64,000 bases of DNA from Epithemia pelagica (Eukaryota > Protista > Bacillariophyta). The notes under the pieces were generated by a model. The model had not been told where the DNA came from and did no database searches. It was given only the letters and a program-made list of their open reading frames with translations. Of this stretch, positions 19,152-63,774 are shown piece by piece. Position 1 is the stretch's first letter. Every line of letters begins with the position of its first letter. Position numbers and translations under genes: made by a program. The DNA lies in assembly GCA_946965045.2 (NCBI GenBank), contig OX337232.1, forward strand, positions 62,001 through 126,000, read 5' to 3'.

Positions 19152-20063
19152 TTACTTGTCATATTTATCCAAACTGATTTTGAAGACACTGGAATACGAG
19201 CCATTTCTTTCGATGGATTTGTAAGTCAAGCCAAAGAACGCTAGACAGTCTTGGAAATACGGTTCCAACTTCAACTTGCCTTTTGCTTCCTTGTACATAA
19301 TGGCTTTGAGTACTTCTTCCGAGATGTGTTGGTCGTCCGCGTTTTCATGGGCTGATAGCTCCAATTTGAGTTTCTTACTGTTCTTGTATTTTTGAAACAT
19401 ATGGAGAGCCAGATCCAGGCACTTACGCTTGTACTTGAGATCTTCTTGCTCCTGTTCCATCTCCTTGACACGCTCTTGGTGGCGTTGCTCCAAGGAATAG
19501 AGATATTCTACCGAATCCACAACGGAGAATCCAGATTCATTGGCTGGAAAGGGAGAGACCTGAATGGCATTGGACAAGACATGATTGGTATTATCAAAAC
19601 CGTAAAATCCAAATTCAGTCAAAAGTGATTCTTTGGTCACGACCGAACTCTTGTAAGGAAGGATCACTTTTCCGTTGCGCATGTAGTCCAAAATATAGGT
19701 AAATCGACCGCCATCCCGGTTAATCGAAATAGGATCACGATTGCTAGCTGTAGCTTTCCGGGAGATTTCTGGATCTATATGCTTTCCGGAAGAATCTTGC
19801 GCAGACTGGAGACGGATATCTCTGTGAGATGACGGTCCATGTTTGTCGGCCGCCGCCAGTTGCGTGAGCTTTGACTGTGGAAATCGATCCAACAGCGCTT
19901 CAGGAACGTCATAGGTTGTCCCTCCCACCAAGAAGGAAATACTGCGAACATAAGGACGGCGTCCGAGCAAAAAGGAAATGCTACGAGAAGCGGACCGGCT
20001 ACAACTCCAATTCATTCTTGCCAGTCTTAGGGCATGACAAACACCACTGAAAATTTTTGGCAT
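19152..20063 (-). CDS. BTB4 (303 aa)
   Basis: SISFLVGGTTYDVPEALLDRFPQSKL...INRDGGRFTYILDYMRNGKVILP...EFGFYGF, then YFQDCLAFFGLTYK. Confidence 0.9.
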   Translation of the reverse strand: MPKIFSGVCHALRLARMNWSCSRSASRSISFLLGRRPYVRSISFLVGGTTYDVPEALLDRFPQSKLTQLAAADKHGPSSHRDIRLQSAQDSSGKHIDPEISRKATASNRDPISINRDGGRFTYILDYMRNGKVILPYKSSVVTKESLLTEFGFYGFDNTNHVLSNAIQVSPFPANESGFSVVDSVEYLYSLEQRHQERVKEMEQEQEDLKYKRKCLDLALHMFQKYKNSKKLKLELSAHENADDQHISEEVLKAIMYKEAKGKLKLEPYFQDCLAFFGLTYKSIERNGSYSSVFKISLDKYDK

Positions 20064-20717
20064 GCTTTTGTCTTGCTAACGAACCACCAATTTATGGTTT
20101 GTCGCTTCCTGTCCATTCCCCTCATCTGTGGAAAGTCACGCTCGTGCTTCTTTCCTCGCTACACGCTCGTGTGGATCGTCGGTTGGCTCCACGTACGACT
20201 CACTCCTCCACGGTTTCTTTGACGACCACAGCACCTCTATTAGTTGCTCACTGCAAGTGCTGGAACGAAACATTGCGACACGTCATCCAGTTCACGATCG
20301 TACATGGTTCGTAGGCTTCCGAGGCGACGGCTATCACACACACACGGTGTGTGAGTGAACGACCGACACGGTCCACCCCGAATCCCTATTGTTGATTGCC
20401 GGAAGAGAAGAGTGAGAGAAGTCGTCTCCGTCGGCGTGCCTGCGAGCCATTCAGGTCGCATGCGATTCACGGTCTGCTACCAGCTTTCGATTCGCACCGA
20501 GAGATCCTAATCCATGATAAAGATAGAGGAATGTAATATAGGCATCGGTCTATCGGAACATCGGAACCTCGCCTGGATTACCAAACATGAATGCGTATAT
20601 CGAAGCTGACTTTCTGGTGACGGCTCTACTACTGCACTGACACGATACTCGTATCCAGAGCTAGGAATCACGACCGACACCTTTCAGTATCCATCAAGTC
20701 GGTTTCCAAGTGGATTC

Positions 20718-22148
20718 TTAGTACGGGTCGAGAATAATCTCCACCTCAACTTCAATGTGGTCGTGCCAGTAACAGATCTCCTTGTATTTAAGACCAAATG
20801 GAGCCAACGACTCTTGATACAACGACGACTTTTGCTCATCTTCCAACTGATGCTCCAACATGATTTCTTTGAGTTGGTCGTATATTTCTGGATGATCCCT
20901 GCGACAACACAGAACTATCCCATCCTCGCAATTTTCAAATAGAAAAAGAGCCACGCGAAGGTAATTCAACTTGTGATCGATAGTCTTTGCTTCTTTTGGA
21001 TTCTTTTTTTTTGCTTCCATCAAGTCATGAATCCGCTGGAGTTGTTCATGTTGAAGGTCCTTCAAGTATTGTTCAGCGTGAAGCTTATGACCATGCATCT
21101 TTCTGAGCACTAGCCAATAAGGAATACCCCAAACCAAGGCATTGCCTGTACGAATTTGAGTATCATCAAAATCAAAGCTTTGGAATACCTTCGACAAGGA
21201 TTCTTTGGTAACATGGCTCTTGTACGGAAGACTGACTTTACCATGATGCATAAAGTCCACAAGGAAACGAAAATGGATCAAATCAACGTTGATCGTAATA
21301 GGCTTGTCGTCGTATGTGTGAACTTTTTCGTCTATCCGGCGCCACTTAGCCTCTTTCGTTAGCCAGCAATGAGGAAACTCGTCAAGCAGTGTTTGTGGCA
21401 TATTCACACAGAGTCCTTCGACCAAAAACGGGACAGTGTTACTGTTGAAGGTCCAAAATTTGGATTGCCCTTCTGCTGGTGAGGGTTCGGTAATACAAGT
21501 CTCGGTCCAATTTTCCTTATCATCGATCCGAAACCTCTTCCTAACCTTCAACAAGGACTGTGGGGTGACTTGGTTCTTGGGCGGAAGAATGACTTTCTCG
21601 TCTCGCATATACTTCACAAGGCAACGAAAATGGTTCAGATCCACGTCAATCGCAATAGGCTCGTCTTCTTCTTCTGCTGGGCGTTCTGCACTAGCAAGTT
21701 TGGCCAGCTTGGTATCGGGAAACTTGTCCAGGAGCTTTTGTGGCACATTCACAGAGAGTCCTTCCACCAAAAACGGAACGCTCTGACGGCGAGGCATAAT
21801 GACTTCACCATTCCCAGACAGATCTGAATCCAGCTGCTGGAACAGAAAAGTGCTCGACCACCCGAGCATTAGTCCTCTCACAAACATCAAGATCATGGTC
21901 TCGTGTCTCTTCTTTCTCTTCTTGCACTCCAGTCTTTCCGGGTAAGGAGCTTTTTGTGAGTGGCAGCGTTTGGTACCGGGATCGACATTTACCTCAAAAC
22001 CCAAAATGCCGCCGTGCGGGTTTTCGTGGTCCGCGTCCAAAACTGTCCCATCTCGTTGTGGGTACGGACGATTGACGGACGACCTGTGTGTATTAGCGTC
22101 TCGCATTTGGGGGCTGGGGGGGGTCACGCACTTTGGGGGAGGGGCCAT
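20718..22148 (-). CDS. BTB5: two tandem BTB domains plus one C-terminal domain
   Basis: VPFLVEGLSVNVPQKLLDKFPDTKL...HFRCLVKYMRDEKVILP and VPFLVEGLCVNMPQTLLDEFP...HFRFLVDFMHHGKVSLP, then YQESLAPFGLKY. Start is ATG 22148 or 21896. Confidence 0.85.
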   Translation of the reverse strand: MAPPPKCVTPPSPQMRDANTHRSSVNRPYPQRDGTVLDADHENPHGGILGFEVNVDPGTKRCHSQKAPYPERLECKKRKKRHETMILMFVRGLMLGWSSTFLFQQLDSDLSGNGEVIMPRRQSVPFLVEGLSVNVPQKLLDKFPDTKLAKLASAERPAEEEDEPIAIDVDLNHFRCLVKYMRDEKVILPPKNQVTPQSLLKVRKRFRIDDKENWTETCITEPSPAEGQSKFWTFNSNTVPFLVEGLCVNMPQTLLDEFPHCWLTKEAKWRRIDEKVHTYDDKPITINVDLIHFRFLVDFMHHGKVSLPYKSHVTKESLSKVFQSFDFDDTQIRTGNALVWGIPYWLVLRKMHGHKLHAEQYLKDLQHEQLQRIHDLMEAKKKNPKEAKTIDHKLNYLRVALFLFENCEDGIVLCCRRDHPEIYDQLKEIMLEHQLEDEQKSSLYQESLAPFGLKYKEICYWHDHIEVEVEIILDPY

Positions 22149-22477
22149 AACGGCGAAACACCATGGTAGGCTGCCGCAAACACAAAAACAAAGGCACACC
22201 AACGCCTCTATACAAGCGCGCCAGTAGACACGTCAGAAGCGAAGCATCGTCCAACAAAGCTGAAGCGAACTCAATTGATGGAAACCACGGTCGTGTTCAG
22301 GCTCCGGGATTGGAGGTTCAACGATTCACACTTGGTGAGACCTCTAGGAGAAGGAAAACTTGGCTGTTAAACAACATTGTTTCGACTACTACAGTCAACA
22401 AAGGAACTTGCCCAGTGCTTACGCTTGGAATACAAACCAAGCTCTTTCAATATTCACTCAAGCAACTTTCGGAGGTT

Positions 22478-23367
22478 TTACATTTGCTGCAACACAACCT
22501 TGATTCCATCTCCAGATTCTTCATGATACATGTCCTTGTACTCCAAACCAAATAACGCGAGGCACTTTTGATGGTACTCTTTCAGTTTCCAGAATACGCA
22601 GTAAGTTCCCATCAAATCGTTTTCAGTGGACCACTTTGCAATGTCGGAACTTGGGGAAACATTCCATAGGATCGTGTCGAGTGCCTGATAGATGGCCTTG
22701 TTCTCGCTCGTCACCGTCATATCAAATAGCTTGGTCTTTCGTTGTTCCTGAAATAGGTACAGCGCCGCGTCCATACACCGTTTCTTGTACTCAATCATGG
22801 CTCCTTCCTTTTCATTCTGGACACGTTCCTGCTCAAGTACCAACAGACGTGAATCATGTAGTTCTTCGAGAAAACCTTGGTTTTTCGCCCCATGCGGCAA
22901 TGAACAGATTAATTCCTGGATTGTGTCGACATATTTCTCAATTTTGTGAGTGCGAGACTGGAAAGTATAATCATCCACATTGTCTTGGTTTGTGAACCCT
23001 AACGACTTCATAGTCTTTTGCAACGTCTTTTTCTTGACATGCGGGGGAAGCTCCACGCCGAGATTGCGCATATAGTCCAAAATAAAGAAAACTGGACCTG
23101 GCCGACTTCCAGCTTATACGGAGCAGGATTCTTTCCCTGCAAAGCTGCGAACACTGATGATGGGGATGACGCGAGCGTGGCAAGCTTGGTGTTGGGAAAA
23201 CGGTTCACTAAGGACTTAGGCACATCAATGGTTCGTCCGTTCGCGAGAAACGCAATGCCTCGATGGAGTCCAGCAGCGCTAGTACCCAGCAGACTTGTAG
23301 TTGTTGTACTAGTCCGTTGCGGATACTTAGTACGAACCAGATTCCAAAGAAGAGTGCTTCGCATCAT
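22478..23367 (-). pseudogene. BTB6: single BTB gene with a 1-nt deletion (or sequencing error)
   Basis: The N-terminal frame (MMRSTLLW...IAFLANGRTIDVPKSLVNRFPNTKLATLA...QVQF) joins FILDYMRN only if one base is restored at about 23087-23091; ends YHQKCLALFGLEY. Confidence 0.8.
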
Positions 23368-24422: not shown

Positions 24423-25658
24423 TTAGTGCGGGTCGACAAGAATCTCCAACTGAACTTCAATGTGGTCGTCCCAGTAACAGATCTCACTGTATTTAAGACC
24501 AAATGGAGCCAACGACTCTTGATACAACGATGACTTTTGCTCATCTTCCAACTGATGCTCCAACATGATTTCTTTGAGTTGATCGTATATATCTGGATGA
24601 TCCCTGCGACAACACAGAACTTTCATATGCTCCTGATACCATGGTAACGACCATTCTTGAAATACAAAAAGAGCCACTCGAAGGCGATTCAACTTGTAAT
24701 CGATAGTCTCTGCTTCTTTTTTATTCACTTTTCTGGTTGCCATCAAGTCATGAATCCGCTGGCGTTGTTCATCTTCAAGGTCCTTCAAGTATTGTCTCGC
24801 GTGAAGATTGTGACCATCCATGTTTTTGAGTAGCATCCAATAGGGCACACCCGAAACTAAAGCATTGCCTGTACGAATTTGAGTATCATCAAAATCAAAG
24901 CTTTGGAATACCTTCGACAAAGATTCTTTGGTAACATGACTCTTGTATGGAAGTCTGACTTGACCATGATGCATGTAGTCCACAAGGAAACGAAAATGGA
25001 TCATATCAACGTCAAGCGCAATGGGCTTGTTGACGTTTCTGTCGCGCCGCAACCATGCATCTGTCGTTAGCCTGCAATCAGGAAACTCGTCAAGCAACGT
25101 TTGTGGCACATTCACACAGAGTCCTTCGACCAAAAACGGGACAGTGCTACAGTTGGTGGTCCAGAAATTCCTCTCTTCTTCTTCCAGAGACGGTTTGGTA
25201 TTACAATTGTCGGTCCAATTTTCCGTTTCATCAATGTCAAATCTCTTCATGACCTTCAACAAGGACTTTGGAGTGACTTTGTGCTTGGGCGGAAGAACGA
25301 CTTTCTCATCTCGCATATACCTCACAAGGCAACGAAAATGGTTCAGATCCACGTCAATCGCAATAGGCTCGTCTTCTTCTTCTGCCGGGCGTTTCGTGCT
25401 AGCAAGTTTGGCAAGCTTGGTATCGGGAAACTTGTCGAGGAGCTTTTGTGGCACATTCACAAAGAGTCCTTCCACCAAAAACGGAACGTTCTGACGAGGC
25501 AAAATGACTTCACCAACGGTTCGTCCTTTCACGAGAAACGCACTACCTCGATGGAATCCAGCAGCACTGGTACCCAGCAGACTTGTAGTTGTTGTACTAG
25601 TCCGTTGCGGATACTTAGTACGAACCTGATTCCAAAGAAGGGCGCTGCGGAACATCAT
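24423..25658 (-). CDS. BTB7: intact chimera of the BTB6 5' end and the BTB5 body
   Basis: 411-aa ORF. The first about 47 codons match BTB6 and the rest matches BTB5; junction at 25511-25516. Confidence 0.88.
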   Translation of the reverse strand: MMFRSALLWNQVRTKYPQRTSTTTTSLLGTSAAGFHRGSAFLVKGRTVGEVILPRQNVPFLVEGLFVNVPQKLLDKFPDTKLAKLASTKRPAEEEDEPIAIDVDLNHFRCLVRYMRDEKVVLPPKHKVTPKSLLKVMKRFDIDETENWTDNCNTKPSLEEEERNFWTTNCSTVPFLVEGLCVNVPQTLLDEFPDCRLTTDAWLRRDRNVNKPIALDVDMIHFRFLVDYMHHGQVRLPYKSHVTKESLSKVFQSFDFDDTQIRTGNALVSGVPYWMLLKNMDGHNLHARQYLKDLEDEQRQRIHDLMATRKVNKKEAETIDYKLNRLRVALFVFQEWSLPWYQEHMKVLCCRRDHPDIYDQLKEIMLEHQLEDEQKSSLYQESLAPFGLKYSEICYWDDHIEVQLEILVDPH

Positions 25659-28045: not shown

Positions 28046-28996
28046 TTATGGTTCGGAACGAACCAGGTCGATAATAAAATCTTCCGTGCCCAAGTTGCAC
28101 GAAATTTGATGATATCGTAACCCAAAGACCACCAAGGACTCTTGATGAAACGTCTTATCCTCATCTTGTACCAGTCGATGATCCACCATGATGGCTCGGA
28201 CAAGGCCATAGATTTCTGGATCCGTAGATTTCTTGGGACAGACAATTCTCAATTGGCCCGTCCGTCGGTATTCTTGAAACAAAAACAGTGCCACGCGAAG
28301 GCGACCCACCTTGAATTCAATATTCCGTGCTTCCTTGGGATTTTGTTCTTTTTCAATCATCATTTCCGAAATCCACAAGCGCTGTTCCGCTTCCAGGCCA
28401 TCCAAGTAGTGGATTGCAGTGGGGACCGATACCACCGCCGTGAGCTTCTGGTCCTCGGGTCGCCAGAAATTGCGCATCCTCGCAAACCATCCATTCTGAC
28501 CTTTACTACTAGTAGTACGAACAGTCATATCTGGAAACCCAAAGTCCTTCAACACCTTGGACAATGATTTGTGGGTGACGCGGCTCTTGTAGGGAAGAAG
28601 GACTGGTTCCTGTCGCAGTAAGTTCACAAGGTACCGAAAATGAATCAAATCCACGTCAATTGGAATCGGCTTGTTACTACTACTCACGCCGTTGATTACT
28701 GTTGGGTCATTCTCCTGGTTGTGGCGCTCCTCCAATGCGGCCAGTTTGGCAAGCTTGGTATCCGGAAACCGGTCCAAGAGTGATTGTGGCACATGTACCG
28801 ACAATCCTTCCACGAGAAACGCAATCTCGTCACTGCTGCGAGAACAGACTCCACCCTCAGAATCATCCTCATTGCTACTACACCACAGTGGATTTAAACC
28901 TGTCCCCCGCGGCTGCTGGTGGTGTCCTCGTAGAACCACCATGCTCGTCCACAACAACACTCCTTGCGCAAACACCATGATCGAAATTTTCCTCAT
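28046..28996 (-). CDS. BTB8 (316 aa)
   Basis: IAFLVEGLSVHVPQSLLDRFPDTKLAKLA...HFRYLVNLLRQEPVLLP, then FHQESLVVFGLRY. Confidence 0.9.
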   Translation of the reverse strand: MRKISIMVFAQGVLLWTSMVVLRGHHQQPRGTGLNPLWCSSNEDDSEGGVCSRSSDEIAFLVEGLSVHVPQSLLDRFPDTKLAKLAALEERHNQENDPTVINGVSSSNKPIPIDVDLIHFRYLVNLLRQEPVLLPYKSRVTHKSLSKVLKDFGFPDMTVRTTSSKGQNGWFARMRNFWRPEDQKLTAVVSVPTAIHYLDGLEAEQRLWISEMMIEKEQNPKEARNIEFKVGRLRVALFLFQEYRRTGQLRIVCPKKSTDPEIYGLVRAIMVDHRLVQDEDKTFHQESLVVFGLRYHQISCNLGTEDFIIDLVRSEP

Positions 28997-31900: not shown

Positions 31901-32166
31901 CCGTGTGCCGTGTCGACAGTGCGTTTGCACACTTTAGAATTGATATCGGAACCATGTCGGTTTGGTTTGTGCATGGGAACGGAACCATGGGAAATTGTAC
32001 GATCGGCCAAATCGCCCTTGGATGTTTCGTGGTTCGGATCGCAGTCTCTGGATTCAAGGCTGCGTCATCCAAAGGAAAAAGGAACAAACGCATTGTGGTT
32101 GAATACACACACATGAGACGTGAGGGTTTGGACGCGAAACAGTGTGAATTGGACCGTCGCACATAA

Positions 32167-32538: not shown

Positions 32539-32609
32539 CCTGTGCATACGAGAACAATAACTCCATCGCATGAGAACTTGGAGAACCTCCGTGAAACTAC
32601 CATGCTCCA

Positions 32610-37869: not shown

Positions 37870-38763
37870 ATGTTGTCGAAACAAGGCCTATGGAACATGG
37901 TTTGGAACCATCAACGGGCTCGAACTTGCATGTCTATCAGTATGAATAGGGCTGCTTGTGGAATCTATCATCGTCCCGTCTCGTTCTTAGTCGAAGGACT
38001 CTCTGTGGATGTGCCACAAACACTGTTGGATCGGTTTCCAAACACCAAGCTCGCGAACCTTGCGGAGGAGCATAAGGGAAGTCAGGCCCACGACGACGAC
38101 AACGAGCCGATTGCGATTGACGTTGAGTTGTCGCATTTTCGTGACATGGTGGCCTTGATGCGCGACAAACGAGTAACGTGTATGAGGGCACACCCCTTTT
38201 TGACAACGCTCGACAGTTTTGGATTTCAGTATTCCAGTGACATTGCGGTGGTCAATGACCATTTGAATGACACGCCATGCAGCGCCCCCATTCTGCATGT
38301 CAGGAAACACCTCGATACCCTGGAAGCCGAATATCAATCACGCATAGCAGCTGTCCGGAACGAACATACTGCAACTCCAAAAGAAACAGCCAAAAAGCTA
38401 TATAAAGCACATTGCCTAACCGCAGCGCGCTTTTTGTTCTTGGAGCACTTGAGGACCAAGAAACTGGAGATATGCGTACCAATGCCTCCTCATTGCAAGT
38501 TGTACACCAACGACGACTGTCACGCACTTGCAACTATCTTGACCTTGATTTACTCCAATGCCGACGAACATGAGGACTTTGCTTGGCATGGGTACGAGAT
38601 CAAACTAACGAAGGAGTGTTTCGAGAAAGACAATGAGTATAAAGCGTACCATCAAGAATGTCTGATGATGTATGGATTGGAATATACGGATATGAATTAT
38701 TTCGACGACGTGGATGAATGGGAAATCATGGTACGCTTGACACAAACTTCGAAAAATGGTTAA
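37870..38763 (+). CDS. BTB9 (297 aa)
   Basis: VSFLVEGLSVDVPQTLLDRFPNTKLANLA...HFRDMVALMRDKRV, then YHQECLMMYGLEY. Confidence 0.88.
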   Translation: MLSKQGLWNMVWNHQRARTCMSISMNRAACGIYHRPVSFLVEGLSVDVPQTLLDRFPNTKLANLAEEHKGSQAHDDDNEPIAIDVELSHFRDMVALMRDKRVTCMRAHPFLTTLDSFGFQYSSDIAVVNDHLNDTPCSAPILHVRKHLDTLEAEYQSRIAAVRNEHTATPKETAKKLYKAHCLTAARFLFLEHLRTKKLEICVPMPPHCKLYTNDDCHALATILTLIYSNADEHEDFAWHGYEIKLTKECFEKDNEYKAYHQECLMMYGLEYTDMNYFDDVDEWEIMVRLTQTSKNG

Positions 38764-49000: not shown

Positions 49001-50048
49001 AACCAATGTTCGAACCAATCCATGTCACAATTAACTCGTGTGTGTGGTTCCATCCTGGAGAGAAACGCGCTGCGCCCTTTTTGCAGCAAGAGGATGACTC
49101 CTCTACCACAACGTCACATGAAAGGAGACCACGCGCTATCTATCCCAACGCGCACACACACATGTCTGGAACTGCCCTCAATGGTCCAACAATGAAAAAA
49201 AAACAGCAGAACCAACTGGTGGTTTCGCCTTTGGATCGTGGTACCAAAATTTCCGGAATCATCCGTGCCCATCCCGATATCGCTTTCGGGTGTGGTTGTT
49301 CACAGCCAAGAGAGTTGTCGTCGTTTCCTTGAAAAAGCGTTTGCCTGCATCGAAGGAGAGTCCAACCAAGCCAGACAACGTTCCAAGAAGGAGAGCACTC
49401 GACACACGCAACAGCAACCACACACGCACCACCCAAATGGAGACCAACAAAGCCTCTACTACAATCGTGTGGACTCCACACAAAGTTCGGTTCCTACGAT
49501 CTCGAGTGGAAAGAGAGGTGGAGTTTATACAGGTCCCTTTCACAAGGAGGCGACCACGGAACGCGACGGTTGCCGAACCAGTACTACGGATTTCGTTTTT
49601 GATCGAGAGTATACGTGTTGCACACTCGTTTTGTCGGACACACGATTGTTGACCCACCATAGACTCGACACAACACTCACACGCTCCTACATCAATCAGT
49701 GCGGCGTCTTCCACAACGAGAAACACTCCACGGTACGCCAAACCACGGCCGAACTGAACGTGTGCATTTCGAATCGTGAGCACCTTGACAGTCGAAGCCA
49801 GTCGTTCGAATATGGAACCTATTCCACGTTCCCAACCATTGGCGTGGTCCCACACGATCCTTATTGCTTGACTGTCAAATCCACTTGGAGGAACGTGGAC
49901 AAGATTTTGGACCCCTTATAGCGAAAGATTGAGTACAGCACGTTTTCAGGTTTTGCGGTAAAACAACAACCAGCTGCGATACTTGAGCAAAAGCACAAGA
50001 TCATTTTTCGCATTCGTGTCTTTATTCCTGGAAAAAACAATCATTATC

Positions 50049-50918
50049 ATGCTTTCGAAAGGAGTCCTCTGGAACAGCATGGTTCGAAAGCACCTCCGGG
50101 CTGCTTTTGCAGTCCATCATCATCGTGGCGTGGCGTTTTTGGTCGAAGGACTCTCGGTGGATGTACCACAAACACTGTTGGACCAGTTCCCGGACACCAA
50201 GTTCGCCAAACTCGCAATGGGAAGTCAGGCGAAGGAAGACGAGCCGATTGAGATTGATATTGATTTGCTCCATTTTCGCTACATAATTGATTACATGCGC
50301 AACGGAAAAGTAACGCTTGCGCATCCGGGCATGGTGGACAAGGAATCCTTGAGGACAAAACTGGATAAATTTGGATTTCAGGATACAAATGGCCTTCTGG
50401 TGGAGAATACTGACACGTCATTTAGCTCCACAGCAATGCATGCCAAGAAAAACCTCGATATCCTGCAGTCCGAATGGGAATCACGTCTAGCAGCTGTTTG
50501 CAACGAACATGAAGCAGCTACAACGTCAAAAGAAAAAGCCAGGCAGATCTACAAGTACGGTTGCTTAGCCGCAGCGCGATTTTTGTTTTTCGAACACTTG
50601 AGGACCAACGAACTGGAACTAATTTTCTCAATGTGTGCAGGAGGCCATGTTACGCAACTTCAAACAATCCATACCTGTGTTTACAACGGCAACGATTTCG
50701 ATCCGAAACCTGATTTTGGTATAAAACACTTGGACGGGGTTTCCGAAGACGACGAGGATGATCATGAAGATATCAAATTCATGATCGAACTCTGTGAGGA
50801 AGATAGTGAGCTTAGAAATTACCATCAAGACTGTATGATGTTGTATGGTTTGGAATATACGAAGCTGCGAACGAATCGGTCGTTTGGTTTGGTGACGTTG
50901 AAACCGGCTTTGAGATGA
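50049..50918 (+). CDS. BTB10
   Basis: VAFLVEGLSVDVPQTLLDQFPDTKFAKLA...HFRYIIDYMRNGKV, then YHQDCMMLYGLEY; ATG at 50049. Confidence 0.9.
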   Translation: MLSKGVLWNSMVRKHLRAAFAVHHHRGVAFLVEGLSVDVPQTLLDQFPDTKFAKLAMGSQAKEDEPIEIDIDLLHFRYIIDYMRNGKVTLAHPGMVDKESLRTKLDKFGFQDTNGLLVENTDTSFSSTAMHAKKNLDILQSEWESRLAAVCNEHEAATTSKEKARQIYKYGCLAAARFLFFEHLRTNELELIFSMCAGGHVTQLQTIHTCVYNGNDFDPKPDFGIKHLDGVSEDDEDDHEDIKFMIELCEEDSELRNYHQDCMMLYGLEYTKLRTNRSFGLVTLKPALR

Positions 50919-53484: not shown

Positions 53485-54336
53485 ATGTTTTCGAAAGGAG
53501 TCCTCTGCAACAACATGGATCGAAACCACCTATGGGGTTCAAATCGGATGCCGACTACTAGGGCTGCCACTGTGGTCTATCATCGTGGCGTCTCGTTCCT
53601 AGTTGAAGGACTCTCGGTGGATGTGCCACAAACCCTTCTGGACAAGTTCCCGGACACCAAGCTAGCCAAACTTGCAATGGGCAGTCAGGTGAAGGATGAC
53701 GAACCGATAGCGATTGACGTCGATTTGCTCCATTTTCGCTACATGATTGAGTACATGCGCAACGGCGAGAAAGTCACCCTTGCACATCCGGGCATTGTCG
53801 ACAAGGAATCTTTGATGACAACGCTGGATAATTTTGGATTTCAGGATACAAGTGACCTCACGGTGGTGAATCCGGACACGTCCTTTGGCTCTGCAGTGAT
53901 GCATGCCAAAAAACACCTTGAAGTCCTGAACGCCGAACATAAATCACGCGAAAAAGCTCTCTGGAACGATATCAACACAGCTACAACAGCAAAAGAACGC
54001 GAGAAACACCGTTACAAGTCCAACTGCTTATACGCAGCGCAGTTTTTGTTTTTCGAACATTTGAAGACCAACGAACTGCACATAGATGTGCCGGAAGACC
54101 CGTTAGAGTGGCACTTCCACCATTACTTCCTTGAAACAATCTATGCCTATGTTTACAACGGTGAACACAACCAAGAAGACGAATCCATCAAATTCATGGT
54201 CGAGTGTTGTAATGAAGATAGTGAGCTTCGAAATTACCATCAAGACTGCATGATGCTGTATGGTTTTGAATATGAGGAGATGAATGTTTACAGGGGTATG
54301 TCCGTACTCTTGAAACCGTCTTTGAAATCAACGTAA
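53485..54336 (+). CDS. BTB11
   Basis: VSFLVEGLSVDVPQTLLDKFPDTKLAKLA...HFRYMIEYMRNGEKV, then YHQDCMMLYGFEY; ATG at 53485 by alignment to paralogs. Confidence 0.9.
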   Translation: MFSKGVLCNNMDRNHLWGSNRMPTTRAATVVYHRGVSFLVEGLSVDVPQTLLDKFPDTKLAKLAMGSQVKDDEPIAIDVDLLHFRYMIEYMRNGEKVTLAHPGIVDKESLMTTLDNFGFQDTSDLTVVNPDTSFGSAVMHAKKHLEVLNAEHKSREKALWNDINTATTAKEREKHRYKSNCLYAAQFLFFEHLKTNELHIDVPEDPLEWHFHHYFLETIYAYVYNGEHNQEDESIKFMVECCNEDSELRNYHQDCMMLYGFEYEEMNVYRGMSVLLKPSLKST

Positions 54337-55044
54337 CACTCTGGGTGGAGCATTTTCGGGTCTTTTTCTTCACAACGTGACTGGTTCTGTCGGTGGAATG
54401 GCAACACGTTTCAGTCTGGACAAAAAACGCTTGGGCAGTATAGACTTGTGAAAAGCAGCACTCGACGTAGGCCATTCCTTTGTGATTTTATACCGTGTCT
54501 CCACTAGTTGCATGGCACCGAACTATGCGTGTCTTGTTGTCTAATACCATAGGTTCTACTACCACACGCCCTGCAAGGAGACTCCCCTCCCTAATGGTAG
54601 ATGGTGGTTGCCGTCGTTGTATTTGTGTGTGTGCGGATTGTGGATTTCGTATTCCAAAGATACAGCCTCGTAGTAGGGGTCATTTTCCCTCGTGTCGTGT
54701 TGTTGTTGTTGCGGCTACTGCTTTGCTTGTTTCGTTGCAATACACTTGGCCCATTCGAGTTGTTGTGCCATCTCGTACAACCGTTTGTAGACACGATGCA
54801 AGGGTATACTCCCGTGGCGATTGTTGTTGGAGTCGTTGGAGCAGTGGCATTCGTGTCTGTTCCACAGACACACGTCGTCCTCCTCCTCCTTGTCCTTCTC
54901 ATTCGTTGGCCATCGAATCGTTGTCATATGCCTTGTTGGTACCCATCCAAAGGATGCCACAGTGTGCATGACGAATCCAAATCGCCCCGTCGACATTCAG
55001 CATTACGCGATTCCATGCATCCGTTTCCTTGTTCTTGTGTCATG

Positions 55045-55440: not shown

Positions 55441-58006
55441 TGATTGATGGATCTAGAGGTACGGAGAGCATTGACCACGGACTGACTTGGACCATAACAA
55501 AGGAGAAACGGCGGTAGAAAGGACCCTGTCTCGGCATTGGTTCTTTTGTGCAATATGGATCCTTCGTGTTGAGATGGTCGCGCTTTGTGTGCACCAAGTC
55601 ATGGAAATCAACCGCATCGAGCATATCATCAAGTCGTGGGTTCCGAACCATTCTTCAGGAACGCAGGAACTATTGCAGTACGTGCGGAGTTGTAAGTTCC
55701 CGATGGGGAGTAAGTTCGGACAATTTGGTGAGTTGGCGTCGTAAGGATCTCGACGTTCCGACCACCATTGTCATGTTGTTTGTAAAGGTAAGACATTTTG
55801 ATTTGTGAATGTTTTGTTTTGAGAAGTTCTTGCCAACGAGAATGAAGAAGAAGAGTCCTCTCCGCTTTGGAAATTCGAAGTACATGATTGGCAACTGGAC
55901 ATGATGGATTGATTCGATTCCAGTCGATTCGAGGTTCTAGAGAATTGTCCAGACGTCGAGAGAAGCGCATCTCGTGTCTCGTTGTCTTGTGTGTAGTTCG
56001 AGGAGCTACACGACCGTCCGTCGTTCCTGAGAAAGTAAAACACACACCGTGTCTTGAGAGAGAGTCTTCTGAGAGTCTTTCTCCACGGCCGGGAGACATT
56101 AAGAGAGTAACAGCAGAAAAGGTTGCCAGAATGCGCCAAAGGTGAATCTCCGTACAACAAAAATACGACGAACGACGACGGCGACAGCCATGGTGGTATC
56201 TTTTTGGGATTTTCCCCCGTGATATGTGGTGTCCCCCTCCCCCCAAAGTCTCTGGAGGAGGGTCCCTTCCAAATGTTTCGGTCGCGGAAATAGAGGACCG
56301 GAATGGCTCGCAGGCGCGCCGACCGAGGCGAAGTGCCACACTCTTTATGGTTTTCATCGCCAACAACCGCACTCTTGCTCCTCGACGGTCGGTGGCACAC
56401 ATCCTTGTGGTCCTACTACTTCAGGTTGATAAACGTCGTGTATCGCGGCATCTTGTTGGAGCACACAATCAGGAATCAGGCATGTCAAGACACACCATGG
56501 TGGTGTGTTCGTTTTGGAGCAGCAAGGAAGAAATCGCCCACTGGTCGTCGTCGTCTGCTTTTCCACCAGGAATGGACGATTCTCGGGTGTGCGACCACCA
56601 ACCAAACGCCCTTTTCGTACTCTGCAGGACAAACAATCTCGAGAACCAAACATGGCGGGGAACGTTTGGAACAGCTCACCACGAATGGACCTTCGGATTC
56701 GACAGGACATGGTCGGCCAAAAGAATCGGGTGATCCAAATGGGTGTATTACACGAGCAAAACGCCTGGTTCCAGTTCCCGTGGACCTCCGTTTCTTCTAC
56801 TCTCTTTCTGGTTGGTCGGACCGACAGTTTGTACAGTGCACGACACGGAGCATGATGGTGCTCCACAATCCACCGGACTGGACCGGACCGAGCCGAACCG
56901 AACCACACACACACACACCAAACAATCGAATCGAAATGGGATTCTGTTTCCAAACCATTTTCGAAACAATCGATGCAACCACTCGCGTGTGCATCCATCC
57001 TGGAGAGAACTGCCTTGTCCCATTTTTGATCGAGAGGATACCAGCCATGACGACTTCTCCATCACAACGTCACATGAAAAGAGACCACCTTATATATCCA
57101 TCCCAACGCACACATGTTTGGAACCAGCCTCTAAGGTCCAAGAATAGAACAAACAGCGGAACCAACGGGTGTGGTGGATTGGTTTTGCCTTTTGGATCGC
57201 GTCGCACCAACATTTCCAGAATCATCCGTGTCCATCCCGATATCGCTTCCGGGTGTGGTTGTTCACGGCCAAGAGAGGTGTCGTCGATTCCTTGAAATGG
57301 CGCACAAGCGTGTGCCTGCATCAAAGGAGAGTACAACTAGTAAACAGACAAAGCGGAGCACTCGAGACGCAATAGCAAACACACACGCACCACAGAACTG
57401 TACACGGATACAGACCAAAGCCACTACTATACAATCGTGTGGACTCCACCCAAAGTTCGGCTCCTGCGAGTTAAGGAAGAATACATGTCTCGAGTCCCTT
57501 CCACAAGGAGCGATTATCGAACCTTTCGTGTTGATCGACAGTACCTGTCGCCTGTCGCGCATTTTTGTTGTCTCACACACGATTCTGGACCCATAGACTC
57601 CTCGACGCAACACACACACGCTCCTACATCCGTGCGGCATCTTCCAAGCAAGAGAAACGCTCCACGTACGCCAAACCACGGCCGAACGGAACGTGTGCAT
57701 TTCGAATCGTGAGCACCTTGGCGGTCGGAGCCTGCAGTCGTCCTACCATGGGACCTATTCCTACCCACACGATCCTTATTGCGGGTCGTGTGCTTGACTG
57801 TCAAACCCAATCCCTGTATCTTGGTGGCAAATGGACAAGATTGGACCCCTAACGAAAGATCGAGTGAAGCGCGCCGCGGCACGTTTTTAGGTTTTGCGGA
57901 AAAACCACAAACGGGTCCGATACTCTCGGGTACCAAAAGACGTCTCGTTTTCGAGTTTAGGTGAAGGATACAACAGCAAGAGACACACACAGTCATCATC
58001 ATCATC

Positions 58007-58894
58007 ATGTTTTGGAAAGGAGTCCTCTGGAACGCACTGATTCGAGACCACCTACCGGTTCTTCGAACTCATCAGATGCCGACTGCAGGAAGGGCTGCTT
58101 TTGCCGTCTATCATCGTGATCGCGGCGTCCCGTTCCTAGTGGAAGGACTGTCGGTGGATGTGCCACAAACACTTTTGGACAAATATCCCGATACCAAGTT
58201 AGCCAAACTTGCAATGGGCAGTCAGGCGGAGGAGGACGAGCCTATTGCGATTGACATTGAATGGAACCATTTTCGTTTCGTTATAGATTATATGCGTCAT
58301 GACAAAGTCGTTGTGCCGTACAAGAGCAGTGTCACCAAGGAGTCCTTGTTGAAGGCGCTTCTAAGTCTTGAGTTTGGTGATGAAGACAGTATCATGTCGT
58401 CAGGCGGCGGAATCCAGATGACAAATGAACCAGATCTGTCGGAAGAAGTCAAGAAATCCAAAATTTCAACTAGAGACGCGATCAAATGGCTGAATACTCT
58501 GGAAGACAAGCAAAACGCACGGATTTTGGCCGTGCAGAAAGAAAAGCAGGAAACTATACAAGACGGAAAGATTCTCGATTACAAGGAAAGTTGCTTTCGT
58601 TTGGCGCTTTCCCTTTTTCAAGAATACAGGAAATTGGGCTCCTTGACAATCCTAGTGTACCTGGTTCCCAATTGTGGAGCAGCCATGGCAGAGCTACATC
58701 ATAAAATTGAAGAACTCATGGTTGTGAAGGAGATTCCTCTCCAACATAAACGCAGGCCGTTCCATCATCTACCAGATAATTTCAAGATGATCCATCAAGA
58801 GTCATTGGCTTTGTTCGGTTTAAAATACCGTGACATTTCAATAGACAGGAACCGTGACATCCTAGTTAAGTTGGAAATTCTTTCGGACGCGTAA
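58007..58894 (+). CDS. BTB12 (295 aa)
   Basis: VPFLVEGLSVDVPQTLLDKYPDTKLAKLA...HFRFVIDYMRHDKVVVP, then IHQESLALFGLKY. Confidence 0.9.
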   Translation: MFWKGVLWNALIRDHLPVLRTHQMPTAGRAAFAVYHRDRGVPFLVEGLSVDVPQTLLDKYPDTKLAKLAMGSQAEEDEPIAIDIEWNHFRFVIDYMRHDKVVVPYKSSVTKESLLKALLSLEFGDEDSIMSSGGGIQMTNEPDLSEEVKKSKISTRDAIKWLNTLEDKQNARILAVQKEKQETIQDGKILDYKESCFRLALSLFQEYRKLGSLTILVYLVPNCGAAMAELHHKIEELMVVKEIPLQHKRRPFHHLPDNFKMIHQESLALFGLKYRDISIDRNRDILVKLEILSDA

Positions 58895-59271
58895 AACCGT
58901 CCTACGAACAGGTCATGCTGACATCTGATCGATGGAGTTTGTAAATGTGAGTAGTTTGCGAGTCTATGTACCTTCTGTTGCTCTTGATCTTGTCAGTCAT
59001 TGCACTCGTATAGCCGCATTGTCGGGCGATGTAGTGGCTGTACCAACCATCGTTGACAGGAATGATGCTGACATCCCCAAACATGTTGCTGGTGGACAAC
59101 ACAACGAACTTGCGCGGTCCCACACGATCCAAGTACACTGTGTAACAGACAGATCACAGCACACGAAAACCTGTGCGTACGGCAGCACGTTTACAGGTTT
59201 TGCGGTAAAACAACAAACGGGTACCAAACGACAGGGTCTCGTTTTTGAGTTTTCGTGGAGGAAAGAACAAG

Positions 59272-60117
59272 ATGATGATGGTATCAAAAGGAGTCCTCTG
59301 CAACAACATTGTTCGAAACCATCCATGGGCTTGGAATCGAATGCCGACTACCAGGGCTGTGTCTGCGGTCTATCATCGCGGCGTCTCGTTTCTGGTTGAA
59401 GGACTCTCGATGGATGTGCCACAAACACTGTTGGACCAGTTCCCGGACACCAAGTTAGCCAAACTTGCAATGAGCAGCCCGGCGAAGGATGACGAACCGA
59501 TTGCGATTGACGTCGATTGGCTCCGTTTTCGCTACATGGTTGAATACATGCGCAACGGGTAAGTCACTTTTGCGCATCCGGGCATTGTCGACAAGGAATC
59601 CTTGTTGACAACGCTGGATAATTTTGGATTTCAGGATACAAGTGACCTCATGGTGGTGAATCCTGGCACGTCTTTAGGCTCTGCAGTGATGCATGCTAAG
59701 AAACACCTTGAAGTCCTGAACGCCGAATATGAATCACGCGAAGAAGCTATCTGGAACGATAAAAAGACGGCTAAAACAGCAAAAGAACGCGCCAAACACG
59801 AATACAAGCACAGGTGCTTAAGGGCAGCGAAGTTTGTGTTCTTCGAACAGTTGAAGACCAACAAACTGAAAATAGACATGCCGCAAGACTTCTTAGAGTG
59901 GGACTTCCACCATATCTACCTTGACACAATCTATGCCTGTGTTTACAACGGTGAACAGAACCAAGGAGGCGAATCTTTCAAATTCATGGTCGAGTGTTGC
60001 AATGAAGATAGCGAGCTTCGAAATTACCATCAAGACTGTATGATGCTGTATAGTTTGGAATATGAGGACGTGGAGGAAGGCTATGTTATCTTGAAACCGT
60101 CTTTGAAATCCACGTAA
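59272..60117 (+). pseudogene. BTB13: BTB11 paralog with one in-frame TAA
   Basis: aac ggg TAA gtc act (59560-59562) where paralogs encode Lys; the same frame continues to LKPSLKST. Confidence 0.85.
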
Positions 60118-60796
60118 CACTCGATCGGGCTGGAGCATTTTCGAGTCTTTTTTCTTCACGACGTGACTGGTTCTGTTGGTGGAATGGCAGCATGTTTCAG
60201 TCTGGACAAAATACGCTTGGGCGAGTAGTACAGAATAGACTTATGAAAAAGCAGGACTAGGCGTAGGCCATTCTCTTGTGACTTTCTACCGTGTCTCCAC
60301 TGGTTGCATGGCACGGAACTAGGTGCGTCTTGTTGGCTTTGGCCTTTTCTTCTCCAAAAGTGTTGCGCGCGCATTTCATTCCACAGTTTCTACAACTGCA
60401 CGCCTTGCAAGGAGACTCCCCTCCCTAGTAGTAGATGGTGGTTGCCGTCGTGGTATTTGTGTGTGCGCGGATTGTGGATTTGTTCCAAAGATACATCAGC
60501 CTAGTAGGAGTCCTTTTCCCTCGTGTCGTGTTGTTGATGTTCTTGTTCTTGTTGTTGCGGCTACTGCTTTGTTTGTTTCGTTGCAATACACTTGGCCTGT
60601 TCGAGTTGTTGTGGCATCTCCGACAACAGTTTGTACACACGATGCAAGGGTATACTCCCGTGGTGATTGTTGTTGGAGTAGTTGGAGCAGTGACATTCGT
60701 GTCCACAGACACACATGTCGTCCACCTCCTTCTCCTTTTCATTCGCCGGCCGTCGATTCCGTGTCATATATCTTGTTGGCACCCATCCACAGGATC

Positions 60797-61290
60797 TCAC
60801 AGTGCGCAGGACGAATCCAAATCGCCCCATCGCCATTCGACATTTAGCGATTCCATGCATCCGTTTCCTTCTTTTGTTATGTCTTTCTGATATACTACTT
60901 TGTCTTTTTCGTTTGGTTCTGTTTCGTTGCGATACATGGCTTGTTCCAATTGTTGCATCTCGTACAGTATTTCATAGACGCGATGCAAGGGCACTCCATC
61001 AGTGGTCGAAGCATTCGCGCCCTTGTCGTCTGGAATCACAAATGGCACCTTGTCGGCTTTCGTGTCATTGGGACGTGGAATCGGCGTCATGCCTTCGCAC
61101 CCCGTCCCTTCCAACGGATCCCACAGGGGCAATGTACTGTCCATATCCAAATCTCCCCGTCGACATTCGGTGTTCCACGATTCGATAGATTCGAGCAAAT
61201 AGGGATAAAATGGATAAATCGAACATTGCAACGGTCGAGCGGGATACATTTAGCAATGCTTGGTTTCTTCGAGTTGGCAATGCCCGTCGA
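60797..61290 (-). pseudogene. YkgJ-like remnant, copy 2
   Basis: EETKHC*MYPARPLQCSIYPFYPYLLES...GCEG, with TAA at 61250-61252 where copy 1 has CAA. Confidence 0.65.
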
Positions 61291-62887
61291 CATTCGTCAT
61301 GGTATCCTCCGATTCCCGCACAAACGGTCGTGTCATGGGCGTTTTCTTGAGGCGAATCCATTGCTGAGACAAGAGGCGTTATGGTAAAAAACGGTATCCT
61401 TGGAATCGAATCAACCAGAATTATACGAAAGACCATCCTCCTTTTCTCCATGACTGGAAAGACCACGTCTTGGGGATTCATTCAATACGGTCTTTGAAAT
61501 CGTTCCGATTCTAGGTCCGCTCTCGTATTATAAGGAAAGCCTTGATCCTGATGGATAAGAGAGGACTGACCAAAGCAGCGTGTACATGGTGAACGAACGA
61601 CGACGAGACTTCGGGATCTTTTTTCTTTTGTGGTTGTGGGTCGCACAGAGGGATCCAGTCGCGTGTCGTGACGGATTGACTGGTCGCGGGTATAACGGCA
61701 GAGAATGGCTCGCAGACACGCCGACCGACGCGAGCTTTCCCACTTTTGGTAGATCCTCGCCAACGGTCCCCTCCAGGTGTGGTAAAGCATCTCTCACAAT
61801 AACCAAAAGAGGCATTGGTCTTGCTCTCCCTCCTCGCCATCTTTCTTGTTATTACACGACAGGCAGACATTCATGTTCCACACAAACGATGTGACGTAAT
61901 AATAACATGGAGACAAAGAACAACACTGTAAATCATGTCACGATAAAGAGACGTGCCGTATCAGCAGCAGCAATCTACAGTCTGGTGTGAATGAATCAAA
62001 AGTCCATTTGGATGACGACTGACACACCAATCGTCGTCCTTACAACAGGAAGGATCCATTCATGTGGCCACAAGTGTGTTACTTGAGTGGTCACAAGACA
62101 GATCAAATTCACACCAGAATCTCTTGTCGTGGTGGGACAAAGTCGATCCTCGAACTACAGCTTGCTGTGCGGCCAGTTATTGATCCATAAGGGCGCTTCC
62201 CCAAGACCAAGCTTGCGCGCGCAATTGCAGGCTGGACACTCTCAATCTCTTTGTGTCCGTGTCGCCGTTCCGATCCAATGTCCACAAGACACGCCTTGTT
62301 GTGGCGTTCCGACAACAAGGATGGATCATGAAACAAAGCCACGCACATTCTGGATGAGAAGCATTTCGCCGATTGGGAGGAAAACGGTGAGACGGATTGT
62401 TGGTTGGAGTATGCCTAGTTTCAATCCACACGACAATGACGAAAACGACAAGAGAAACTCAATGCCAGACCAAAAAGTGACTGGGCTATGAACGTCCTTT
62501 TGGAGCAACGACAGTCTTGGCAACCCAGTGCCGCAACGCTACCAACAAACGAACAAGACCAACGTTTGTGTTTGGGAATGGCGCTCCAGAACTTTATTCA
62601 TACCGAGGCGGCACGGGACTCACCTTTTTCATTCTGATGGAGCTTGTTTGGAATGAAGAACAAGCAGCTTGATTGGAAGAAACCAAGCAGAACGGCCAGT
62701 GGCAAGATCACTGTGGAGAAACACTACCAATAACTCAAGGAGAAGATCTTGTTCTGCACATAGCTATGAGACGGCAGCAAAGGTTTTGAGGGGAAGCACT
62801 CACTGCAGAAAAACATTAACACACATCAAACCAGCACATGCTGTGTAATTTGTCCGTATCGACAAAGATAAAGAAGAAATCACAAGA

Positions 62888-63774
62888 ATGATTCCAACGG
62901 TCGTTGTGAAAACCGCAGTGCGGTGCAAGAACATGCTTTGTTCGGGGACGACGACGAGCCGCTTTGGAAGCGTTTCATGTCGAAACCTGCGTGGCATTTC
63001 GTTTCTGGTCGAAGGACTTTCCGTGGATGTGCCACAAACACTCCTGGACAAGTTTCCCGATACCAAGCTAGCGAAACTTGCCAGGGACAACTCAGGAAAA
63101 GACAGTGAGCCTATTGCGATTGAAGTTGATTTGAACCATTTTCGTTTCCTTATAGATTATATGCGTCATGACAAAGTCGTTGTGCCGTACAAGAGCAGTC
63201 TCACGAAGGAGTCCTTGTTGAAGACTTTTCAAAGTTTTGAGTTCGATGATGGAGACAGTGTCTTGTCGTCAGGTGGCGGAATCCAGATGGAAAATATGCC
63301 AGATCTGTCGGAAGAGGTCAAAGAATCCAAAATGTCAACCACACAAACGCGATCCATTGGATGAATACTCTTGAAAAAGAGCAAATTGCGCGTATGTTGG
63401 CCGTGGTGCAAGAAAAACATGAACAAAGACTAGAAGGACATAATCTTGACTACAAGGAAAGGTGCCTTGATGTGGCGCTTTTCCTTTTTCAAGAATACAG
63501 GAAAGCGGGCAGCTTGTCAATTAAGGTGTACGCCAAAGAAAGAGTGAAACGTTTTGAAGACATGAGCCGCAATACTGAAGTAACCGTTTCAGCAATGCAT
63601 ACTAAAGTTGAAACAATCATGACTATGACGGAACATCAGCTCGTTCCTAATACCCTCAAGACGTTCCACCAAGAGTCATTGGCTTTGTTTAGTTTGCAAT
63701 ACGCTGGTTTTTCTAAAACACACGATGGCATTGAAGTTCAGCTGGTCCCCCTTCTTTCGGAAACAGACCCGTAA
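62888..63774 (+). pseudogene. BTB14: BTB12 paralog with a 2-nt insertion
   Basis: Removing one AC from accacaca (63338-63345) gives KMSTTNAIHWMNTLE, matching BTB12 KISTRDAIKWLNTLE. Confidence 0.85.

Follow-up and report, generated by a model that had tools for sequence, protein, structure and literature searches.

The N-termini of the BTB proteins encoded at this locus raise the question of whether a tandem gene family has acquired an address for the mitochondrion. The original prediction, made for the 64,000-nt stretch of DNA analysed here (the window), held that most of these paralogs carry mitochondrial presequence-like leaders. The KCTD/T1-type BTB genes form a tandem, single-exon, birth-and-death cluster that occupies about 52 to 126 kb on a contig of 243 kb, most of it inside the window; BTB15 belongs to the cluster and sits just beyond the window end. 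Retrotransposons interrupt the cluster, and a dispersed paralog is located outside of it (L002:9938-10861); both this paralog and BTB15 are intact. The nine leader-bearing members (BTB4, 6, 7 and 9-14) were found where they had been placed, with leaders that are indeed short (27-41 aa), basic (net charge +4 to +8) and acid-poor (0-2 acidic residues); the leader peptides quoted at the time proved exact.

Of the genes described here, six are encoded on the reverse strand: (i) BTB3 (17081..18088; Pfam BTB_2, E 2.5e-12) serves as leaderless reference and has, as originally described, an acidic, non-presequence start (net charge -2 over the 22 aa ahead of strand 1). (ii) BTB4 (19152..20063) is intact in the sequenced haplotype, the allele of the other haplotype being truncated; the tree puts it outside the FLVEG clade, and its type C leader (19941-20063; 41 aa, net charge +8, no acidic residue) ends in VRS. 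(iii) BTB5 (20718..21896) is a double-BTB protein with a hydrophobic, then acidic N-terminus that is not presequence-like. (iv) BTB6 (22478..23367) is a pseudogene, shifted in frame by a 1-nt deletion near 23083, with a leader (23257-23367; 37 aa, +5, no acidic residue) ending in HRG; on the other haplotype the frame is kept at this site and the start codon is lost. (v) BTB7 (24423..25658) is an intact double-BTB member with a relic strand 1 following its leader (25545-25658; 38 aa, +5, no acidic residue, HRG). (vi) BTB8 (28046..28996) opens with a hydrophobic segment of 19 residues, to which an acidic linker is attached.

The six forward-strand genes described here all possess a leader. BTB9 (37870..38763; leader 37870-37977, 36 aa, +5, no acidic residue, ending in HRP), BTB10 (50049..50918; leader 50049-50129, 27 aa, +5, no acidic residue, HRG), BTB11 (53485..54336; leader 53485-53589, 35 aa, +4, one acidic residue, HRG) and BTB12 (58007..58894; leader 58007-58126, 40 aa, +4, two Asp as acidic residues, DRG) are intact. 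BTB13 (59272..60117; leader 59272-59382, 37 aa, +5, no acidic residue, HRG) is a pseudogene due to an in-frame TAA at 59560-59562, in place of which the other haplotype has a frameshift within the leader. BTB14 (62888..63774), with a type B leader (62888-62995; 36 aa, +6, no acidic residue, LRG), is likewise a pseudogene, its frame being shifted by a 2-nt insertion near 63340. Since three of the nine leader-bearing members (BTB6, BTB13 and BTB14) are pseudogenes and the alleles of the two haplotypes are broken in different ways by independent lesions, part of the family is decaying.

Each gene product combines a T1/KCTD-type BTB domain with a C-terminal alpha/beta domain. The Pfam profile PF02214 (BTB_2; gathering cutoff 21.4 bits) recognised BTB3, 4, 5, 7, 10, 11 and 12 with 21.7-47.4 bits, BTB8 (19.0) and BTB9 (21.2 bits) scoring slightly under the cutoff. 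The AF2 model of BTB10, compared by Foldseek, matched the T1 domains of Kv2.1, Kv3.1 and Kv4 as well as the BTB domains of KCTD1, 15, 16 and 17 (probability ~1.0, TM by target 0.6-0.69 and rmsd 3-4 Å against T1/KCTD crystal structures). In this model, residues 1-24 have a pLDDT below 50 and include a low-confidence helix at residues 7-17, strand 1 starts from residue 27, and the leader is predicted to lie outside the fold and to make no contacts with it. The C-terminal domain is modelled confidently (pLDDT 84, pTM 0.81) and has no significant match among PDB structures or Swiss-Prot models (best E-values 0.3-0.5); ORC1/winged-helix-like matches among these were weak and are distrusted. Pfam provided no match for this domain either, KCTD_C included. 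The ESM Atlas yielded a single diatom BTB cluster (TM 0.48), and the detected relatives of the domain are diatom proteins only. Feature searches of the ESM Atlas with BTB10 and with the BTB4 leader alone returned generic BTB clusters only and no clue to localisation.

Automatic gene callers placed the start at an internal Met in the dispersed paralog, in the BTB4 allele and in BTB9, BTB11 and BTB13, and five automatic models (P0006, P0007, P0008, P0012, P0017) begin 13-25 aa before strand 1. Together with the pseudogenes, the independent lesions on both haplotypes and the retrotransposons, this may indicate that the leaders are largely irrelevant, either because translation starts at an internal Met or because most of the cluster is silent and in decay, the basic composition then being inherited from a single ancestor rather than selected. 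We consider this explanation quite unlikely. BTB10 has no Met from residue 11 to strand 1 and therefore requires the upstream start, and the versions shortened by internal Met starts are still basic and acid-free. Start codon and frame are kept in eight paralogs (alignment A1), in which the gaps after the ATG are all frame-preserving, whereas the stretch between upstream motif and ATG aligns poorly with irregular gaps; this also disfavours the leader as a 5' UTR. The other two frames of the leader DNA mostly have net charges of -3 to +3, encode 1-7 acidic residues and are interrupted by stop codons in 21 of 24 cases. The basic, acid-poor property is frame-specific, beyond chance, and an artefact of nucleotide composition was ruled out, as most of these frames are closed and their products are neutral and contain acidic residues. 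Finally, pairwise omega of the BTB core (0.11-0.45) reflects purifying selection, so that the genes have been functional.

The motif referred to above, AGGTTTTGMGGNRAA, is a conserved upstream element exemplified by the copy at 49948..49962 (forward strand) ahead of BTB10. Further forward-strand copies are located at 37796, 53401, 57889, 59195, 62781 and 63985, while that of BTB5 is found on the reverse strand at 21988-22002, about 92-106 nt upstream of the inferred start, thereby supporting the start at 21896. Nine matches compare with 0.07 expected, and in BTB9-15 the distance to the leader ATG amounts to 74-118 nt; the sequence probably acts as a common promoter or 5' UTR element. In five of the seven motif-bearing members examined (BTB5, BTB9-14), no ATG intervenes between this motif and the leader ATG. 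Taken together, the leaders are very probably translated.

The leaders are not independent of each other. BTB9-13 share one homologous leader and BTB6 and BTB7 carry a variant of it, such that seven of the nine go back to a single ancestral leader. Those of BTB4 and BTB14 cannot be aligned to the common type but match it in composition, which also argues against a merely inherited basic character. Across the four leader types, defined for the pooled acid count as not alignable by pairwise DNA alignment, none of 142 residues is Asp or Glu, compared to 16.5 % in the mature parts (P ~7e-12). All 11 leaders pooled contain 61 Lys/Arg and 4 acidic residues among 398 residues. In the pooled composition, Arg and Ser each account for 12.7 %, Leu for 9.2 %, Thr for 8.5 % and Ala for 7.0 %, which we take to be near the values of classical presequences, with His, Asn, Trp and Cys presumably above presequence expectation. 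The richness in Ser and Thr originally attributed to all leaders holds for BTB4, 6, 7 and 14 (20-32 %) and fails in BTB10 and BTB12 (5-7 %).

An Arg at position -2 relative to the V/I/S opening strand 1 is present in all nine members as well as in BTB15 and the dispersed paralog, and in all 11 leaders strand 1 comes immediately after R-(G/S/P). Most leaders end, as originally described, in (H/L)RG (HRG 5/9, LRG 1/9). At position F-4, Arg is found in 11/11 leaders versus 7/130 relatives from other assemblies. Acid-free basic leaders with a fixed Arg at -2, present in versions unrelated in sequence, support the view that they have the composition expected of a presequence cleaved by MPP.

The leader may thus represent a mitochondrial matrix presequence, a reading to which we assign a probability of roughly 0.45. 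It would be recognised by TOM20/22 and imported via TIM23, MPP would cut after Arg-Gly, and the mature protein would start at strand 1. Once imported, the BTB domain would act as an oligomeric scaffold rather than as Cullin-3 adaptor, with partner specificity provided by the fast-evolving C-terminal domain. To our knowledge, no Cullin-RING ligases occur in mitochondria. Literature searches revealed neither a KCTD/T1-type BTB protein of the mitochondrial matrix nor a link between diatom BTB proteins and presequences.

With respect to amphipathicity, no excess was observed: maximum hydrophobic moments (11-mer) ranged from 0.39 to 0.72 and compared with shuffles of the same leaders at p 0.09-0.99. 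The likeness to a presequence lies in composition only and excludes residue order. The original reading is partly supported: composition and the Arg at -2 are those expected of a presequence, amphipathic order is at shuffle level, and the N-termini of BTB8 and BTB5 are at odds with a matrix signal.

Shuffle-level amphipathicity speaks for a translated leader devoid of an import signal, i.e., a disordered basic tail on a BTB adaptor that works in the cytosol or nucleus, which we regard as rather unlikely overall. Such a tail could serve as a membrane- or nucleic-acid-binding arm, as a regulatory or degron segment, or as a strand exchanged between oligomer subunits, and the proteins would act like other KCTD-type proteins, possibly with Cullin-3; we know of no reliable sequence signature for Cullin-3 binding in T1-type BTBs. 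This agrees with the KCTD/T1 fold, with the highest leader conservation being found in the stretch adjoining strand 1, and with near-neutral leader omega in several pairs. It also agrees with the pennate diatom Seminavis robusta, in which tandemly expanded BTB/POZ families with reproduction-biased expression and partly positive selection were described and no organelle link was reported (PMC7335047). However, full exclusion of Asp and Glu across four non-alignable types combined with a fixed Arg at -2 would be unusual for regulatory tails, the leader makes no contact to the fold in the AF2 model, and acidic residues do occur in the N-terminal extensions of relatives from other diatoms.

Other destinations were considered as well. 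The basic leaders lack a hydrophobic signal-peptide core (maximum Kyte-Doolittle 15-mer <=0.85), and the diatom plastid/ER route is therefore excluded for them; inspection by eye revealed no PTS2-type peroxisomal signal in the leaders. A hydrophobic core is present only in BTB8 (maximum 15-mer 1.89, with 6 acidic residues in the N-terminus) and weakly in BTB5, both without the ASAFAP-type Phe junction. BTB5 and BTB8 are members of the leader clade, and the occurrence of their hydrophobic or acidic N-termini within the same clade is an observation that speaks against a matrix signal.

The N-terminus of BTB8 is homologous to the common leader despite its hydrophobic turn. One may speculate that the N-terminus is a labile address label directing paralogs to different compartments, so that the family diversifies in location: basic leaders to the matrix, BTB8 and BTB5 to a membrane (signal-anchor or ER), and the acidic BTB3 to the cytosol. 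This would be in line with the hydrophobic segment and acidic linker of BTB8, with the hydrophobic start of BTB5, and with a relative in another diatom (P0022 cluster) that has a signal peptide, then Phe (a diatom plastid-type junction), then BTB. It would also suit the swapping of leaders between gene bodies through recombination, as seen in BTB7 and the L003 chimera. As the localisation calls involved rest on eye or simple indices, we consider such a label very unlikely.

Returning to the presequence reading, the derived nature of the leader is in its favour. The BTB domain begins within 20 residues in 98 of 145 representatives, and since relatives outside the assembly mostly start BTB within about 20 residues, sequence comparison supports the leader as derived state of a species-restricted clade. 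Basic acid-poor leaders of 20-70 aa belong to the present assembly, besides three basic extensions of different composition found elsewhere (P0079, P0124, P0133), and exact-protein look-ups yielded matches confined to one ENA assembly.

Pairwise omega of the leader (0.33-1.03) and of the C-terminal domain (0.53-0.98) exceeds that of the BTB core. Presequences evolve fast, as do the leaders; leader omega near 0.5-1 equally fits an unconstrained disordered tail and in this respect counts against a presequence. Values of the C-terminal domain, with dN/dS <= about 1, fit relaxed or diversifying selection alike. The predicted tandem, rapidly diversifying nature of the family is thus borne out as regards tandem arrangement, quick turnover and fast evolution outside the BTB core, and left between relaxed and diversifying selection as regards its cause; the comparisons support a species-restricted family of this kind.

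The original prediction had further likened the cluster to plant restorer-of-fertility-like PPR clusters, which are tandem, fast-evolving nuclear genes with N-terminal mitochondrial signals. By analogy, BTB oligomers imported into mitochondria might track, by their variable C-terminal domain, a mitochondrial or mitochondrion-resident target, for example a selfish mitochondrial element or a parasite or virus associated with the organelle, forming a protein-scaffold counterpart of Rf-PPR. Of all proposals considered here this is the least probable. The BTB family shares the tandem arrangement and fast evolution, its mitochondrial signal being merely possible, but differs by lacking an RNA-binding repeat and a known mitochondrial target. 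As the family has no known tie to mitochondrial genes or RNA, the analogy to Rf-PPR and cytonuclear conflict is conjecture. We know of no cytoplasmic incompatibility system in diatoms.

If the leaders are import signals, this would be, as far as could be found, the first KCTD/T1-type BTB family sent to mitochondria, and a young family that acquired an organelle address via a short tail shift from acidic (BTB3) to basic. The hydrophobic or acidic N-termini within the clade and the leader swaps make the cluster a compact natural system for studying origin and exchange of targeting signals among paralogs. If the leaders serve no import, the cluster represents another lineage-specific BTB expansion like those described from pennate diatoms, with the uncharacterised C-terminal domain as remaining interest.

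Compared to classical MPP-cleaved presequences, the leaders are similar in length (27-41 aa), net positive charge, near absence of Asp and Glu, richness in Arg, Ser, Thr and Leu, an Arg two residues ahead of a putative cleavage site, and conservation of composition rather than sequence. They differ by shuffle-level amphipathicity and many His, Asn, Trp and Cys residues, targeting and cleavage being putative here. With KCTD and Kv T1-type BTB proteins (PF02214), the cluster proteins share BTB_2 profile matches and the Foldseek-detected fold, whereas their C-terminal domain matches neither KCTD_C nor any other Pfam family and the presequence-like leader is, as far as known and found in literature, lacking in KCTD proteins. 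MATH-BTB genes in nematodes and grasses represent lineage-specific tandem expansions. Such expansions, as in Seminavis robusta, are the closest known analogues: they likewise form species-specific tandem arrays with a conserved BTB domain, a faster-evolving partner-binding part, pseudogenes and structural differences between haplotypes. In contrast to these, one clade of the present cluster gained an organelle-type N-terminal leader, and the variable domain, in contrast to that of MATH-BTB proteins, adopts a predicted fold seen only in diatom relatives.

The short basic N-terminal extensions (leaders) that precede strand 1 of the BTB domain had been described for nine members (BTB4, 6, 7, 9, 10, 11, 12, 13 and 14), and this observation is confirmed: the nine leaders comprise 27–41 aa with a net charge of +4 to +8 and 0–2 acidic residues, all of them carry Arg two residues before the V/I/S opening strand 1, and the three leader peptides quoted in the original prediction are exact. 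The S/T richness also claimed holds for BTB4, 6, 7 and 14, but not for the remaining named members. The two alternative frames of the leader DNA mostly yield net charges of −3 to +3 with 1–7 acidic residues, and only three of the 24 alternative leader frames are free of stop codons. Leaders of BTB10, BTB7, BTB14 and BTB4 do not align with each other in pairwise DNA alignments, even though the 5′ flanking region of BTB14 is homologous (DNA alignment of eight 5′ regions). Pooled, these four leaders contain no Asp or Glu in 142 residues, compared to 16.5 % in the mature parts (P ~7e-12). Since the property is frame-specific and acid-free across four unalignable types, it is real, and an origin by chance or base composition is ruled out. 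Nine leaders are, however, not nine independent cases, due to the shared ancestry of most: one leader is common to BTB9–13, BTB15 and a dispersed copy, with variants in BTB6/7 and BTB8. Among the nine members, BTB6, BTB13 and BTB14 are pseudogenes, the lesions of BTB6 and BTB13 differing between the two haplotypes.

According to ORF listing and motif scans, the array genes consist of a single exon encoding a BTB_2 domain (Kv T1/KCTD type) and a C-terminal domain of ~150–180 aa, which terminates in a conserved HQ(D/E)(C/S)L..(F/Y)GL.Y motif. The structural model of the latter is confident (pLDDT 84, pTM 0.81) and displays a long helical hairpin and, after it, a small alpha/beta unit ending in a beta-hairpin; it has no significant structural match among PDB and Swiss-Prot models, matching only a diatom BTB cluster (ESM Atlas) and whole-protein diatom models (AlphaFold DB). 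With an omega of 0.53–0.98 the C-terminal domain is the fastest-evolving part of the protein, which fits a predicted module for binding partners, with selection either relaxed or diversifying.

The window lies on contig ctg1226l (243,187 bp), from about record position 61,150 onwards. The range first proposed for the family includes BTB4–BTB14, with BTB3 located just before it and BTB1 and BTB2 at 185–4765. The array extends past the window, as BTB15 (P0010; leader of 36 aa, net charge +6) begins ~80 nt beyond its end, and further, partly broken copies lie ~4–9 kb ahead of its start. The common leader is also borne by a dispersed paralog on a 916-kb contig (L002:9938-10861). Between BTB2 and BTB3 (5708–16680), two LTR-retrotransposon-like coding regions are found, one with an ORF of 1255 aa on the minus strand, the other with ORFs of 531 aa and then 1485 aa on the plus strand. 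Intergenic repeats common to array units (54695–55033 and 60541–60873; 84–92 % identity) and recurrent ORF fragments with an LGRR(A/V)CEPF motif (near 30872, 47523 and 55629) may represent a mobile element, now decayed, that has spread across the cluster.

A second contig (ctg1216l) shares the gene order, with synonymous divergence of ~1–3 % for BTB4, BTB5 and BTB7 and a higher value for BTB8; we regard this contig as the other haplotype. A chimeric gene on it (L003:10001-14731 and L004) fuses the BTB12 leader with a BTB11/13-like body and is interrupted by a retrotransposon of the copia type (matches to Pol_BBD and RVT_2). The two haplotypes of the cluster are unlike in gene content, and different copies are broken. 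Within the array, the paired copies BTB11/BTB13 and BTB12/BTB14 reflect segmental duplication. BTB5 (20718–21896, minus strand) and BTB7 (24423–25658, minus strand) each possess two tandem BTB domains before one C-terminal domain, a layout that points to unequal crossing-over within the array. In BTB7, ten residues remaining from a third strand 1 come directly after the leader, and both are joined to a BTB5-like body; as this gene and the chimera on ctg1216l show, leaders and bodies have recombined.

In the alignment of the eight 5′ regions the ATG is invariant, identity downstream is high and all downstream gaps keep the reading frame; between a conserved upstream element and this ATG, alignment is poor and the gaps are irregular. 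This element, AGGTTTTGMGGNRAA, has 9 matches versus 0.07 expected, on the plus strand at 37796–37810, 49948–49962, 53401–53415, 57889–57903, 59195–59209, 62781–62795 and 63985–63999, and on the minus strand at 21988–22002 and 18511–18525. It is located 74–118 nt upstream of the start in BTB9–15 and ~92–106 nt in BTB5, while in BTB3 three copies of a related repeat, GTTTTGAAGTGAACAG, occur no more than 210 nt from the ATG; AGGTTTTGMGGNRAA probably represents a promoter or 5′ UTR element specific to this family. In five of the seven motif-bearing members examined (BTB5 and BTB9–14), the first ATG downstream of the element is that of the leader, and BTB10 has no Met from residue 11 to strand 1. 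Automatic gene calls chose an internal Met in several members, which was not counted as evidence, and exact-protein look-ups for family members matched in this assembly (ENA ERZ21939226) only. Translation from the upstream leader ATG is likely, but unproven.

The leaders agree with mitochondrial presequences in length, charge, acid exclusion and pooled composition (R 12.7, S 12.7, L 9.2, T 8.5, A 7.0 %), in the invariant Arg at −2, and in TOM20-type hydrophobic motifs present in most of them. Counting against this assignment are frequent His, Asn, Trp and Cys, the N-terminus of BTB5 (hydrophobic start, then acidic) and that of BTB8 (28826–28996, minus strand), where the leader-homologous segment is now a 19-residue hydrophobic stretch with basic flanks and an acidic linker. 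The latter is more suggestive of a signal-anchor or signal peptide than of a matrix presequence, and its hydrophobic character is retained in the BTB8 of the other haplotype (P0009). Three further points favour a presequence: the basic leaders have no signal-peptide core, which in a diatom excludes a plastid route; AF2 models the leader as unstructured except for one short helix; and leader evolution outpaces that of the BTB core (omega 0.33–1.03 vs 0.11–0.45). No leader exceeds shuffles of its own residues in hydrophobic moment, so that the likeness to presequences is one of composition only; the original proposal is reasonable and testable. Baker, Schatz and Lemire reportedly observed in the late 1980s that a considerable share of random N-terminal peptides, if basic and acid-free, can drive some mitochondrial import, which makes at least partial import of the leaders plausible and, by the same token, their resemblance cheap. 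A role of the leaders in mitochondrial targeting may be given a probability of about 0.45.

When 1.84 billion representatives were searched exhaustively with a profile, 1,132 matches were obtained (494 with E 1e-10 or better). Relatives identifiable by name or structure match come from diatoms (Epithemia clementina; an Atlas cluster in which Bacillariophyta predominate), the AlphaFold DB matches presumably being entries of Fragilariopsis cylindrus and Fistulifera solaris, as assumed from the accession series. Of 145 representatives, 98 have the start of the BTB domain within their first 20 residues, and basic, acid-poor leaders of 20–70 aa belong to this assembly, save three compositionally different basic extensions (P0079, Asn/Ser-rich; P0124, Lys-rich; P0133, hydrophobic). 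Relatives of the family in another diatom (P0022 cluster: P0022, P0158–P0162) display a hydrophobic signal peptide with Phe directly after it, then a hydroxylated basic stretch and the BTB domain. Judged by eye, this is a diatom plastid-type bipartite signal, such that organelle-addressed members may exist elsewhere in diatoms.

In a tree built on the BTB and C-terminal domains with leaders removed, the copies of this assembly form one clade (support 99/96), inside which the FLVEG clade (100/99) unites bearers of the common leader, BTB8 and the BTB5/7 bodies. BTB4, whose leader is of a separate type, falls outside the FLVEG clade and adjoins leaderless BTB3. The acidic 22-aa N-terminus of BTB3 and the related motifs upstream of it are similarly spaced, from which the leader looks like a remodelled N-terminal tail, not a captured exon. 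In relatives from other assemblies, the position of the junction Arg is Arg in 7 of 130 and the next position Thr in 84 of 130; the Arg-Gly junction is derived.

The original analogy to plant restorer-of-fertility-like PPR clusters, i.e., cytonuclear conflict, would require mitochondrial import, site-level diversifying selection and a mitochondrial target. It is unsupported and is regarded as very improbable. The duplications, leader/body recombination, retrotransposon insertions and haplotype-specific pseudogenes are ordinary birth-and-death evolution. Tandem BTB expansion in a pennate diatom has already been reported for Seminavis robusta, where species-specific BTB/POZ expansions show reproduction-biased expression and some positive selection (PMC7335047).
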